DNA from: Carpediemonas membranifera BICM
Lineage: Eukaryota; Protista; Fornicata
Length of the DNA stretch: 64,000 nt
Reading direction: 5' to 3'
Assembly: GCA_019828565.1 (NCBI GenBank)
Contig: JAHDYR010000001.1
Span: forward strand, 434,001-498,000
The translations under genes and the position numbers were made by a program. Of this stretch, positions 36,305-44,896 are shown piece after piece. A model generated the notes under the pieces. The model was not told where the DNA came from and made no database searches. It saw only the letters and a program-made list of their open reading frames with translations. Position 1 is the stretch's first letter. Each line of letters starts with the position of its first letter.

Positions 36305-36386
36305 GTGCGGATGGCCGAGTGGTCTAAGGCGCTGGTTTAAGGCACCAGTCTCTTCGGGGGCGTGGGTTCGAATCCCACTTCGCACA
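36305..36386 (+). tRNA. tRNA-Leu(AAG)
   Basis: Acceptor GTGCGGA/TTCGCAC plus discriminator A. D arm with A-box TGGCCGAGTGG. Anticodon stem CTGGT/ACCAG with loop TTAAGGC. Long variable arm CTCTTCGGGG. T arm GTGGG-TTCGAAT-CCCAC. Confidence 0.95.
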
Positions 36387-39300
36387 TATGTTTATTGACG
36401 AATCGGTCAGCGCTACGGAGAAGCACACGGAGGGCTCGTTCGACGTCGTGGTCGCTCGTGGGCACGCTCGGGGTGGTGTGGGGGCGATACGAGGCGTTGG
36501 GCCTAAAAGTGCGCGTTGCAGATTTTCGGCACTTCGACACCGAATGCGGGAATTTCGCTGAGAAAGCAACGAATACGGAAAGTAGCGCTGAAAAAGAAAT
36601 CAATATCAATTAGTCATCGCAAAAGGCGTTGTAGCCATGCGATGCAAGCACAGCGACCGCGTGCCGTGCTTCTTCAGTCCAATCACGGGCAACGAGGCAG
36701 TTTCCTCTCCAAATTGCTGCGAAAACACGTTCATGAACACGTGTTGCGTTCTTGCCGCTCATCAAAGCGGTGAACTCCTTCATCCAACCGTTTGCCGTCA
36801 CCACGTGGCCGCCCATCTCTGAGCGCCTACCGCAGCGCCCATCGAGGGACACTACGGCCGGGATCACATCAACATTCCACGGGGCGTACCGCTCACGCTT
36901 CTTCCGAGCCGTGTCGTGGTACTCGTTCGAGACCACAACATCGATGGCCGTAGGGTTCGTGCCGCGGTCGTTGAACGCGAAGACGTCAACTCGGGCGTCT
37001 CTGTGCGTTGTGTCGGGGTCTTTCGTGTAACGGGAGGAGTGGCGGAGCCAGAACTCCTTCCTGGCAGGGACACCGTTGTTTGAGAGCTCCGAGAAGAGAC
37101 TCTCGACGATCGTGTCGTGCCTGGCGGTGGTCTTGGCTCCTCCGTGAAGGCATTTGCATGTCACCATATGCTCTGGGGTGGCCAACACGTGTCGGGGGTC
37201 AGCTCCGACGTTCAACTGGCCTGATGCCGCATTGGTTACTGACTTCAGGGCACAGATTGGACAGAACTTAGTCGCGGACACGAAGGCAGCAAGCCCGAGG
37301 TGCTTTCTGAGGGCCGCCTGCAGCGGGACACCTGTAAGGCTCGTTGTGTGATCGTGACTGCGAAGGGGGTCGGCAGTCAGCGCGCGGCTTAGCACACTGG
37401 GCTGCGCTGTGTCGACACGAGCTTCCTTGGTCATGTTGGTAGTTATCTTGTCAACCAAGTGTGCCTGTGTCTTCTCAGGCAGGGCCAGCAGCTGGGCTTC
37501 GGTGACTGGCCAACCAGTTGTGAGGTGCTGGAAACCTTCGCTGATTGTGGAAAGGGTGGCAGGAAGGCCATGCTTCTCCCCGTACCGTGCAAGTTGGCGC
37601 AGGGCACCAATCCTGGCACACGGCCAGACGATAGTGGGCATCGCGAAGCCCAGGCCACCATGCTTTGCCGGCAGCCCCAAGGCCTGACTGATGTCTGGCG
37701 ACAGGGTGCGGCCAAGCACCTTCCCAACGACGTCGGATAGGGTGGACTGGCAGAAGGTCTCTGCGGGAGTGAGCACCTCGGGGGTGGGATCGACATTACG
37801 CATCAAGTGTGCAATCTTGGGGAGGACACAGAACTTGATCATCGACAGGGCTGGGCCAACACCCTCCGCACCGACATCCTCGCTGAAGTCGGCGATGGCC
37901 TTGAGGGTCAGGGCAGCCTTGTCAACAACTCTCTGCACTTCTCCCCGGACGAACGACTCCCGGACCGACGGGAACACCGGTGATCACATGGGCCCCCACT
38001 CTACGGACATGGTCGGGGCGATCCAGGTTGGTGTCATGCCCGGCACCTTGGATGAGCGCGACGCACTTGGACAGGTTGAGGCTCATCCCCACTTGGGAGA
38101 AGAGCTGCTTAGCGGTTTTCGCGATCTCATCAGCCGATGCCCGGTCGGTCAGGATGTACGTGTCGTCCTGGTACGCGACTACACGGACGTTGTAGATGCT
38201 GCGTAGACGATCCAAGACGGGCTTCATCCCAAGGGAGAATAGAAGCGGAGACAGCGGGTCACCCTGCTGAACCCCTTCCTCTGAACGAAGGACGACTCCC
38301 GACGTGGAGAGGAGCAGCGACGAAGAGTACTGCCCCTTCACGTAGTCAACCAGGGCGGGACAGTAGGTGCTGACACATCTCAGCAGGAAGTCCCGGCTCA
38401 GGGTATTGTACGCGTTCGACAGGTCCAGGGATAGGACCGTACCACCGTCGTCGAAGTGACGCCTGGTGATGGCGACCATGCGCTCCAGACCACAACTCTC
38501 TCCCAACCCGAACTGGTCAACGAAGACCTCCTCGCGGAGCTTCGGCAGGACCGTTTCGGCAGCAGCCTTGGCCGCGATGCGGCGCAGGGCTTCTCCCATT
38601 GCTACCGGACGGAGCTTGCCGTTCTTCTTCGGGATGGGTACTAAGATGCTGTGGCTGAAGATTGCGTAGTTATTGTCACCATCGATGATCGCCTGCACGA
38701 TCGGCAAGAGAGCTGCGACGAGCTCCTTGCGCATGATCTTGTAGGCTACCCTCAGGTGGAGGAAGCTCAGGCCGGTGGGTCCGGGAGCCTTGTCGGCGGG
38801 GAGGGACCCAAGAGCTTTCTTGAGAATCTTTCGGGGAGATGGTGATAGACGATAACGGGGCCGCTGGCACGTCTGACCAAGAGAAAGCCTCGAGGCCATC
38901 AGGGGAGGGGTGTGCTTGCAGCTCCGCCAACTCGCGGTCGACCTCCTCGTCCGACTTGGACTGCTCAGGGCACATGAGCGTATTGACTGCTCTTGCCAAG
39001 TAGCCACTCTTGGCTTGAAGTAGTGCACGCTTGCTCCTGCGGGTGCGGGCCCGGTTGGGGGCGGACCTAGGGGGACGGCGAGAGGAGGCGACAAAGGTGT
39101 CCAGCGTTGCTGGGTACCTCGCGAGCTGGAGTAGACGTTCCGTCTTCGTGGCAGGCTGGGCCGAAGCGACATCTGTCAACCGGTCGACAAGACCGCGTGA
39201 CCAGGCGGTCGCCTTCCGGGTTGAGGGCTTCATGCGACCCAGTGATAGGGCTACTTTCGGAGACGGGAGCCACTCCGGCCGCCTGTTCGCACCGTCGTGA

Positions 39301-40183
39301 CGGCACGTGAACATGATGGCGGGGGGAGGAGGGAGTGGAGTGGCGAGGGATGACTCGAGCTGTGAGCCCAGGTCGGCGGCTGGCGAGACATGAGTCTGGG
39401 AGCCACCCTGCGCGACAAGAGGGGCGCACCAGGCATGTGGGTGGCGGAGAGAGGGCTCTGCGGCTGTGTGCCCTCGGGCTGAGACTCGGTCTCTGGGGTT
39501 GGGTTGCTCCGCGTCAGATCCGACACTGAAGCAGTCTATCACCGATACTGCCTGTGGCTCCGGAGCTGGCTCGGCTTGCGTTACTCGAGCCGCGTCGACG
39601 ATGGAGGCAGAATGATGGCGATGCTGAGGCAGGGGCGAGAGGGATGGCGTGCCAATGTTGCCCTCGTGGAGAGGCGAGGGAAGCGGGCCAGTAGTCCCTA
39701 CATCAGTTAGAGAGGGGGTGGGGGACGCCAACGGATGCTGCGGCCTTGGCAAGGCGCCCTCTGGATCCCTGACGAAGACGAACTCGTGGTCAGTAAGCGA
39801 GATCAGCCTCTTCGCGTAGCGCTGAACTCTATCGATCGTCTTGACACTTTGGATCTTCGGCCAACGAGCTGGTAGCTGCCCTAGAGCAGCCGTCGCCAAC
39901 CTGCAGAGAATCGCATAGAAGTCAGATGTCTTGATCTTCTTCTTGGGCGTCTGAAGGATCTTACGTAGCAGTTCATTGTCTCTAAGGACGTGTAAAACGC
40001 CCTCTTCGGCAAACCAGGTCTGTAGGAAGGTTGTTGGAATCATTCCGTGGTATTCTCTCTGAATCGTGTTGGCCTCTGCGAGGAAAGCCAAATAACGACG
40101 ATGAACGGATCTAGAATCGTCTGGAGGCGGATTGGGAAGCTCATTGCCGCCCGAATTGCCTTCCATCGTGATGTTCCGTTAAT
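36387..40183 (-). mobile_element. CRE-like RT-RLE non-LTR retrotransposon, full-length copy 1, at the tRNA-Leu 3' end
   Basis: Flanked by CCACTTCGCACA at 36375-36386 and 40184-40195. One long frameshifted ORF 40166->36610. AATAAA just before the 3' end, no poly(A). Confidence 0.92.
36610..40166 (-). CDS. Copy 1 ORF: RT, CCHC-like knuckle, restriction-like endonuclease (frameshifted)
   Basis: APGPTG, LRPVAMGEALRRI, DQFG, DLSNAYNT, GVQQGDPLSPLLF, YQDD, LNLSKC, GGLG. Then CPIC...HMVTC, RHD, E, RVD, IDV and KKRERY (RLE motifs). Confidence 0.9.
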
Positions 40184-40195
40184 CCACTTCGCACA

Positions 40196-43990: not shown

Positions 43991-44002
43991 CCACTTCGCA
44001 CA

Positions 44003-44877
44003 TATGTTTATTGACGAATCGGTCAGCGCTACGGAGAAGCACACGGAGGGCTCGTTCGACGTCGTGGTCGCTCGTGGGCACGCTCGGGGTGGTGTGGGGG
44101 CGATACGAGGCGTTGGGCCTAAAAGTGCGCGTTGCAGATTTTCGGCACTTCGACACCGAATGCGGGAATTTCGCTGAGAAAGCAACGAATACGGAAAGTA
44201 GCGCTGAAAAAGAAATCAATATCAATTAGTCATCGCAAAAGGCGTTGTAGCCATGCGATGCAAGCACAGCGACCGCGTGCCGTGCTTCTTCAGTCCAATC
44301 ACGGGCAACGAGGCAGTTTCCTCTCCAAATTGCTGCGAAAACACGTTCATGAACACGTGTTGCGTTCTTGCCGCTCATCAAAGCGGTGAACTCCTTCATC
44401 CAACCGTTTGCCGTCACCACGTGGCCGCCCATCTCTGAGCGCCTACCGCAGCGCCCATCGAGGGACACTACGGCCGGGATCACATCAACATTCCACGGGG
44501 CGTACCGCTCACGCTTCTTCCGAGCCGTGTCGTGGTACTCGTTCGAGACCACAACATCGATGGCCGTAGGGTTCGTGCCGCGGTCGTTGAACGCGAAGAC
44601 GTCAACTCGGGCGTCTCTGTGCGTTGTGTCGGGGTCTTTCGTGTAACGGGAGGAGTGGCGGAGCCAGAACTCCTTCCTGGCAGGGACACCGTTGTTTGAG
44701 AGCTCCGAGAAGAGACTCTCGACGATCGTGTCGTGCCTGGCGGTGGTCTTGGCTCCTCCGTGAAGGCATTTGCATGTCACCATATGCTCTGGGGTGGCCA
44801 ACACGTGGCGGGGGTCAGCTCCGACGTTCAACTGGCCTGATGCCGCATTGGTTACTGACTTCAGGGCACAGATTGGA
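44003..44877 (-). mobile_element. CRE-like RT-RLE element, 5'-truncated copy 3
   Basis: Only the RLE region and 3' UTR are present. Followed by CCACTTCGCACA (44878-44889) and unique flank. Confidence 0.92.
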
Positions 44878-44892
44878 CCACTTCGCACAAAC

Positions 44893-44896
44893 TTTT
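44893..44896 (+). terminator. Probable original Pol III terminator of tRNA-Leu, displaced ~8.5 kb by the array
   Basis: TTTT 3 nt after the last copy of the tRNA 3' end (CGCACA-AAC-TTTT). Confidence 0.6.

Follow-up and report, generated by a model that had tools for sequence, protein, structure and literature searches.

A single-ORF, R2-type retrotransposon at the 3′ ends of tRNA-Leu genes in Carpediemonas membranifera

How can a retrotransposon return to one base of one kind of tRNA gene, copy after copy, and leave that gene whole? The question is raised by a stretch of 64,000 nucleotides (nt) of the Carpediemonas membranifera genome (C2:434001-498000; hereafter the window), in which an intact tRNA-Leu(AAG) gene is followed by three tandem antisense copies of one retrotransposon that lacks long terminal repeats (non-LTR retrotransposon), or long interspersed element (LINE), with a restriction-like endonuclease (RLE). 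The answer that best explains the locus, with a probability of about 0.88, is an autonomous LINE specific for the ends of tRNA-Leu genes, which would insert through target-primed reverse transcription (TPRT) and rebuild its target each time.

Site-specific RLE LINEs such as R2 are under development as RNA-templated gene writers, and the chief question to be answered there is how these elements choose a target and move to another. The genome described here offers closely related, presumably recently active families that strike different tRNA genes with an accuracy of one base. Their reverse transcriptase (RT)-RLE core is conserved; their N-terminal region is not related from one family to the next, the pair with a common Leu target excepted. 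This makes target switching testable and the genome a system in which to study retargeting. The sparing of the target is unusual as well: all six tRNA-Leu(AAG) genes bear an element at their 3′ end with their sequence kept, which bears on the coexistence of a compact genome with its parasites and on termination by RNA polymerase III (Pol III) after the native trailer has been replaced.

Insertion at the ends of tRNA-Leu genes

The single tRNA called across the window (ARAGORN) is tRNA-Leu(AAG), at 36305-36386 on the plus strand; it is backed by Rfam (RF00005, 57.1 bits), and four more tRNA-Leu(AAG) genes elsewhere in the genome have the identical sequence. Its final 12 nt, CCACTTCGCACA, have four exact matches, starting at 36375, 40184, 43991 and 44878, against 0.02 expected from shuffles. 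The first of these (36375-36386) is the tRNA end itself, the target-site copy that adjoins the newest element. Copy 1 (36387-40183, 3797 bp) and copy 2 (40196-43990, 3795 bp) are full length and copy 3 (44003-44877, 875 bp, element positions about 2922-3797) is truncated at its 5′ end; 12-nt target-site duplications lie on the plus strand between copies 1 and 2 (40184-40195), between copies 2 and 3 (43991-44002) and distal to copy 3 (44878-44889). The coding strand of all three copies is the minus strand, antisense to the tRNA. They are more than 99.7% identical, differing by a few single-base indels and one substitution, and each terminates in ...CAATAAACATA, with no base between this terminus and the tRNA or a 12-nt repeat of the tRNA end. 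A first-pass annotation of this sequence had described three antisense copies of these lengths, four occurrences of the 12-mer, element 3′ ends joined right after the discriminator base and a tRNA left intact, and the renewed mapping bears out each of these points. Rfam returned only the tRNA, apart from mir-1204 matches far below threshold.

The association extends beyond this locus and was followed through the entire assembly (24.2 Mb in 69 contigs), which holds six tRNA-Leu(AAG) and three tRNA-Leu(CAG) genes. The 3′-terminal 15-mer of the element occurs 12 times and is followed in 12 of 12 cases by tRNA-Leu 3′-end sequence (10 AAG, 2 CAG); none of these termini lies at an unrelated site. 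Three are those of the window (locus C2:470305), two lie at C11:34509 (a full-length copy and a distal 17-nt stub of an older copy), one at C11:403220 (a 691-nt copy whose 5′ junction has gained 5 nt ahead of the 12-nt duplication) and one each at C16:439119 and C16:549833, all of them at Leu(AAG) genes. Old fragments account for the termini at C16:480921 and C59:38011, and the Leu(CAG) genes C55:17401 and C55:31901 carry one each, with a terminus that departs slightly in sequence. Upstream of the occupied genes the flanks are mutually unrelated, and the association with tRNAs is therefore not that of a copied block. The five full-length 5′ ends all start at one and the same base, directly after the 12-nt duplication by which every copy is flanked; 5′ truncations vary (875 nt in the window, 691 nt on C11) and 3′ ends are invariant.

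Copies of this family (hereafter the Leu family) that seem to lie far from tRNAs are parts of copies next to a tRNA, into which other transposons have since inserted. At C16:439119, for instance, 27 nt are kept at the tRNA and the remainder of the copy is found 10.5 kb further on, with a 3-nt overlap; this distal part is itself broken by an insertion of ~6 kb with a 5-bp duplication. The insert (C16:451011-456955) is flanked by the duplication CCACT, typical of an LTR retrotransposon, and the composite of Leu-family copy and insert is duplicated at C16:463805-465432. Yet another element, which ends in short (AAGGT)n runs, also interrupts Leu-family fragments on C16, and such a run is present in the window at 35455-35476, ~830 bp upstream of the tRNA. 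The tRNA-Leu(AAG) gene at C16:439119-439200 has G for C at position 4, a change expected to cause a mispair of the acceptor stem, and it may be a decaying copy.

Occupancy of the tRNA-Leu(AAG) genes is complete. All six, five of them identical in sequence, carry at the exact site a terminus or stub of the Leu family or of a sister family described below, and the number of pristine tRNA-Leu(AAG) sites left in the genome is zero. The sole gene without the Leu family (C59:48236) has a 10-nt stub that matches the end of the sister. Two of the three tRNA-Leu(CAG) genes are occupied; the third, on C6, is empty, with its native T5 trailer visible.

The element and its protein

What kind of element is this? 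An intact full-length copy lies at C11:30711-34508, and its one uninterrupted open reading frame (ORF) of 1185 residues is deposited as KAG9395359.1 ('hypothetical protein J8273_2917', Carpediemonas membranifera). The element consists of a 5′ untranslated region (UTR) of 17 nt, a single ORF and a 3′ UTR of 223 nt and lacks both a poly(A) tail and terminal repeats; the predicted structure of the 3′ UTR is modest (z = -2.55) and an AATAAA motif lies ~5 nt ahead of the element end. In copy 1 of the window the corresponding parts are a start codon at 40166, a stop at 36610 and a 3′ UTR of 223 nt at 36387-36609 (minus strand) that ends in ...CAATAAACATA without poly(A), and the ORF is broken across three frames by two 1-nt insertions, one near 38833 and one near 37960, both in G/C runs and both uncompensated.

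The RT core is recognised by Pfam RVT_1 at residues 512-705 of the intact ORF (E 1e-20) and at the equivalent positions of copy 1 (38054-38635, minus strand; E 2e-21), and among PDB proteins the RT matches the reverse transcriptases of R2 and L1 ORF2. A family profile made of the protein and its homologues aligns with R2 proteins of known structure over a span that begins in the pre-RT region and takes in RT, linker, CCHC knuckle and endonuclease (E 3e-53). Invariant in the CCHC knuckle and the endonuclease are C969, C972, H1000, C1004, H1017, E1038, D1061, D1076 and K1090 of the intact ORF; in copy 1 the CCHC knuckle and endonuclease core occupy 36898-37263 (minus strand). The last 256 residues were modelled with AlphaFold2 at a predicted local distance difference test score (pLDDT) of 88, and the best fold matches of the model are R2Tg and R2Bm (E 2e-6 and 2e-5, probability 1.0; R2 proteins overall 2e-6 to 1e-4), followed by other PD-(D/E)xK nucleases. 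By the profile alignment, the invariant CCHC and E/D/D/K residues and the R2 fold matches, the element is a single-ORF RLE-type non-LTR retrotransposon of R2-type architecture. The RLE type assigned to it at first sight is upheld by the protein, and of the features of RLE elements it has a LINE-type RT, a C-terminal CCHC followed by PD-(D/E)xK, a fixed 3′ end with 5′ truncations, and a target-site duplication. The element is probably autonomous and recently active.

Outside the RT, Pfam detected no N-terminal zinc finger, Myb or other domain in the intact ORF (E up to 1). Its first ~450 residues contain just four Cys, scattered, and a single-sequence AlphaFold2 model of the N-terminal part is of low confidence (pLDDT 52); it may conceal a helical DNA-binding fold.

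Mechanism, layering and target choice

The observed junctions, 12-bp duplications, 5′ truncations, site specificity, domain content and one intact ORF would be explained by the following course of events. The ribonucleoprotein of the element, presumably through its N-terminal region (~residues 1-290), would recognise the 3′ part of tRNA-Leu genes as DNA sequence, and the endonuclease would nick the tRNA-sense strand right after the discriminator base; this strand is indicated as the primer by the element 3′ end, which abuts the last tRNA base in antisense orientation. The resulting 3′-OH would prime reverse transcription from the non-adenylated 3′ end of the RNA, leaving the element antisense to the tRNA. 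In the nick order proposed here cleavage of the opposite strand would then follow 12 bp upstream, where the 3′ half of the T stem begins and directly after the B-box segment GGTTCGAATC, and fill-in would duplicate the final 12 nt of the tRNA. The rebuilt gene would stay a target, new copies would enter between the tRNA and older copies, and arrays would grow in this way. The first-pass annotation had placed the two nicks at the same positions, after base 73 and 12 bp upstream, a placement which the junctions and 12-nt duplications favour. Priming by a tRNA was considered separately and rejected, no CCA being present at the junction.

If new copies enter next to the tRNA, the layers of an array should be ordered in time. 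The sequence distal to copy 3 (44890-44916, minus strand) resembles a native flank with a T4 terminator, but it is a 27-nt 3′-terminal stub of the sister RLE family: the same 28 nt in C16 are continuous with the sister 3′ UTR and RLE ORF. It forms a fourth and oldest layer of the array and is cut off in turn by another transposon that starts at ~44917. The sister family is ~66% identical to the Leu family in DNA, ~56% in the RLE protein and 45-49% in the N-terminal and RT regions. Its 28-nt terminus occurs four times in the genome, each time after a 12-nt duplication, and one junction of the family retains only 8-9 nt of duplication; sister copies lie at C2:499020-500171 (~1 kb past the window end), C16:459517-460206, C16:466298-467867 and C59:38034 onward. 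At C16:480921 and C59:38011 the order is the reverse, with a Leu-family stub distal to a sister copy, and since both orders are seen the two families have been active over the same period. The proximal copy as the youngest is a rule that fits the other loci, because the copy cut by a transposon is always the distal one there. The earlier proposal that the distal truncated copy is the oldest therefore stands as to the direction of growth, but the oldest layer in the window is the sister stub beyond it.

How many insertions, then, does the window record? Copy 3 has C at element position 2993, like most genomic copies, where copies 1 and 2 have A; by this difference it is an independent insertion event, as had been argued from its truncation. 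Copies 1 and 2 are each other's closest relatives. They share two frameshift indels (C5 to C4 at element position 759 and GG to GGG at 2224) that both the intact C11 copy and the C16 copies lack. It is possible, at somewhat less than even odds, that the two are one insertion doubled at the DNA level by unequal crossover between the 3′ 875 bp of a full copy and the older truncated copy. Such a crossover predicts exactly the observed order of tRNA, full, full and short copy, and the shared indels, together with the divergent base of copy 3, agree with the suspicion, voiced at the outset, that copies 1 and 2 are a DNA-level duplication. The same pattern is expected, however, if copy 2 gave rise to a defective RNA that moved either in trans or, where copy 2 itself lies, in cis, which fits equally well; both copies have private indels besides the shared ones, and successive independent insertions at the same site are found elsewhere (C11:30684-34508, C16:480921, C59:38011). 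All the indels lie within short C or G runs, so assembly error is possible.

Several points weigh against a tRNA-end-specific LINE that inserts by TPRT. The protein has no recognisable DNA-binding domain, Pfam being blank beyond the RT and the N-terminal model poor; with the frameshifts shared by copies 1 and 2, no more than two independent insertions are certain in the window, that of copy 3 and that of a single full-length copy; the array layout and the frameshifts are taken from the assembly; and the 12-nt duplication would look the same had read-through RNA annealed to the target over 12 nt.

The annealing of read-through RNA leads to an alternative for the choice of the site. In this alternative RNA-DNA pairing would select or fix the site, the 12 nt of a read-through transcript annealing to the nicked target and templating part of the duplication. 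We consider it unlikely, although an antisense element would give read-through RNA complementary to the tRNA-sense strand, the AATAAA near the element end is not accompanied by an integrated poly(A) tail, and the observed structure fits RNA templating and a staggered cut alike. Pairing would still need an endonuclease nick at a defined base, the sister family has only 8-9 nt left at one junction, and the N-terminal region of the protein co-varies with the target. Between the Leu and sister families, which share a target, this region is as conserved (45-49% identical) as the rest of the protein, whereas no similarity is detectable in the ~first 290 residues to a tRNA-Thr family of the same genome or to P0001, a relative from outside it, despite ~40% RT-RLE identity. 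The co-variation makes it likely that the N-terminal region is the specificity module.

More doubtful still is targeting by tethering to the Pol III machinery (TFIIIC/TFIIIB), in the manner of Ty3 or the Dictyostelium TRE elements, instead of by sequence recognition. Tethering would give meaning to a second-strand cut directly after the conserved B-box segment GGTTCGAATC, which is seen in the Leu targets and also in the tRNA-Thr targets of a sibling family; but the junctions are exact to the nucleotide, each family keeps to one tRNA species, yet Pol III factors bind all tRNA genes, and insertion goes on where an older element already stands in place of the downstream sequence. With each family limited to one tRNA species and junctions that are base-exact, the target is most likely read as DNA sequence. 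That the association or the array is an artefact, either of segmental duplication of a tRNA-plus-element block or of assembly collapse or expansion, is very improbable: some C16 and C59 fragments are clear segmental duplicates with identical flanks, and the array is known from the assembly, but the occupied tRNA genes have unrelated upstream flanks (the ground on which block duplication was rejected as the source of the association), insert lengths and 5′ junctions vary between loci, private indels resolve copies 1 and 2 as distinct, and sibling families at other tRNAs show the same geometry.

What becomes of the tRNA gene? Insertion swaps out its native trailer. The Leu-family end, read antisense, offers T3 plus T2 only, with the next T4 ~140 nt downstream; the sister terminus, which in tRNA orientation is AACTTTTAC, gives a T4 run at the usual place. 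The tRNA-Leu(AAG) presumably still works, since all six genes are occupied and five are identical in sequence.

Related families and known systems

Across the assembly at least 93 sequences match the RLE domain; they belong to several families with 28-35% identity and often form long arrays. Two sibling families were examined in a partial survey, one at tRNA-Thr(AGT) and one at tRNA-Ala(AGC). Both resemble the Leu family in an RT-RLE region that is ~30-40% identical, an element 3′ end placed exactly at the tRNA boundary, an intact tRNA and tandem arrays; both differ from it in their target tRNA and in an unrelated N-terminal region. The Thr family is inserted antisense at the 3′ end of the gene, and its array copies are joined by the last 12 nt of the tRNA, CGGGAGGGAGCA, a duplication of the same length as that of the Leu family. 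Six tRNA-Thr genes head such arrays; two RLE families with very long arrays (C1:482172-546454 and C6:1107736-1159727, and others on C19, C24, C39 and C68) occupy the tRNA-Thr(AGT) 3′ end, one of them with a 5′ UTR of just 2 nt. The Ala family mirrors the geometry of the Leu and Thr families, in that its element 3′ end abuts the first tRNA base, at the 5′ end of the gene and in sense orientation (C63:891307-891599, and an array of three copies at C4:5399-14840).

Tentatively, and with rather less confidence than doubt, these families may be seen as a Carpediemonas radiation of RLE LINEs that would share a module for tRNA gene boundaries, with cuts precisely at a gene's first or last base and a stagger of ~12 bp by which the gene would be restored every time, would choose their tRNA (Leu, Thr, Ala) by a swappable N-terminal region of ~290 residues, and would supply a T-run terminator from an A-rich 3′ terminus (T4 in the sister and Thr-B, T3+T2 in the Leu family). 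If this is true, they would represent a natural, retargetable and non-disruptive safe-harbour writer, and the elements would now be part of tRNA-Leu(AAG) expression, because every such gene is occupied.

Other repeats share these loci. The transposon that begins at 44917 of the window belongs to a repeat family with the ends GCTAGACTAGGCTAGCCACC...CCCAAAGGGG or variants of them; it repeatedly starts 10-29 bp downstream of a current or former tRNA 3′ end, cuts RLE elements to short stubs and resembles a second transposon that targets sites downstream of tRNAs. The neighbourhood of the tRNA-Leu locus is rich in transposons: at 47450-49987 and 58928-62518 (both minus strand) and at 19213-20712 (plus strand) of the window lie ORFs that combine an RT with RNase H and integrase domains, as in a Ty3/gypsy-type pol, together with one more RT ORF. 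ORFs of 712 and 1854 residues with FG-GAP and ephrin-receptor-like cysteine-rich repeats, at 26007-33855 (minus strand), probably encode surface proteins.

Outside this genome the closest relatives are P0001 (39% identical, from a Logan contig) and P0073 (GCA_002919055.1), and the next matches score far lower. P0001 has only 24 nt beyond its stop codon, P0073 has no tRNA within 341 nt of its 3′ flank, and a metagenome scan found no relatives with flanks outside this genome. The protein matches of the single-protein, profile, Atlas and representative searches are all unnamed or hypothetical and include no named CRE, NeSL, R4 or HERO reference. The label 'SLACS' that one paralogous Carpediemonas fragment bears in GenBank is automatic; it is the sole hint to a putative place in the CRE clade, such as the first-pass label 'CRE-like' suggested. 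The literature search, which did not extend to Repbase reports, turned up neither a paper on such transposons in Carpediemonas nor an account of an RLE element placed exactly at the 3′ end of tRNA-Leu. Reviews do count tRNA genes among the known targets of LINEs.

How does the Leu element compare with the systems that are known? R2 (R2Bm, R2Tg), which gives the best profile and fold matches, shares with it a single ORF with RT, linker, CCHC and C-terminal PD-(D/E)xK, sequence specificity, a 3′ junction that is precise and free of poly(A), and 5′ truncation to varying lengths. The two differ in target, 28S ribosomal DNA for R2 and the end of a tRNA gene for the Leu element, and in outcome, insertion of R2 inactivating the ribosomal DNA unit whereas the 12-bp duplication of the Leu element regenerates the target. 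Unlike R2, the Leu element has no N-terminal zinc-finger or Myb motif detected by Pfam, and its 5′ UTR of 17 nt leaves no room for a 5′ ribozyme, of which Rfam found none.

The CRE clade of trypanosomatids (CRE1, CRE2, SLACS, CZAR) comprises RLE-type elements, specific for a site in a small-RNA gene of many copies, where staggered cutting leaves a duplication. The Leu element agrees with them in endonuclease type, in having a multicopy small-RNA gene as target and in the duplication; their target is the spliced-leader gene and that of the Leu element a tRNA gene, no insertion in spliced-leader RNA genes being found among its 12 termini, all of which adjoin tRNA-Leu sequence.

RLE elements that are specific for tRNA genes have been described in Trichomonas (NeSL-1_TV, tRNA-Pro) and in planarians (LIN15_SM, tRNA-Arg; LIN25_SM, tRNA-Glu) (Kojima & Jurka 2015, PMC4640811). 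Each uses one tRNA species, as the Leu element does, and NeSL-1_TV also comes from a metamonad. The junctions of LIN15_SM and LIN25_SM lie inside the tRNA body and interrupt the gene (PMC4640811, S6 Fig), unlike those of the Leu element, which sits antisense at the gene boundary, has Leu as its target and regenerates the gene. The NeSL/Utopia group has one to three N-terminal zinc fingers, with an Ulp1-like protease in nematode NeSL (PMC4640811); Pfam found neither NeSL-type zinc fingers nor such a protease in the ORF of the Leu element.

Dictyostelium TRE5/TRE3 and yeast Ty3 are likewise retrotransposons that use tRNA genes as safe havens; they employ an APE endonuclease or an integrase, and Pol III factors position them, near tRNA genes of any kind, at a distance of tens of bp (PMC5391098), whereas the Leu element has an RLE fold, inserts with base precision and uses one tRNA family. 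The Dada-tL transposons of fish share the tRNA-Leu target (PMC8869645), but they are DDE DNA transposons with 6-7-bp duplications inside the gene. The novelty supposed at first sight is therefore to be narrowed: RLE elements specific for tRNA genes were already known, and what is new is the Leu target and the boundary geometry by which the target is spared.

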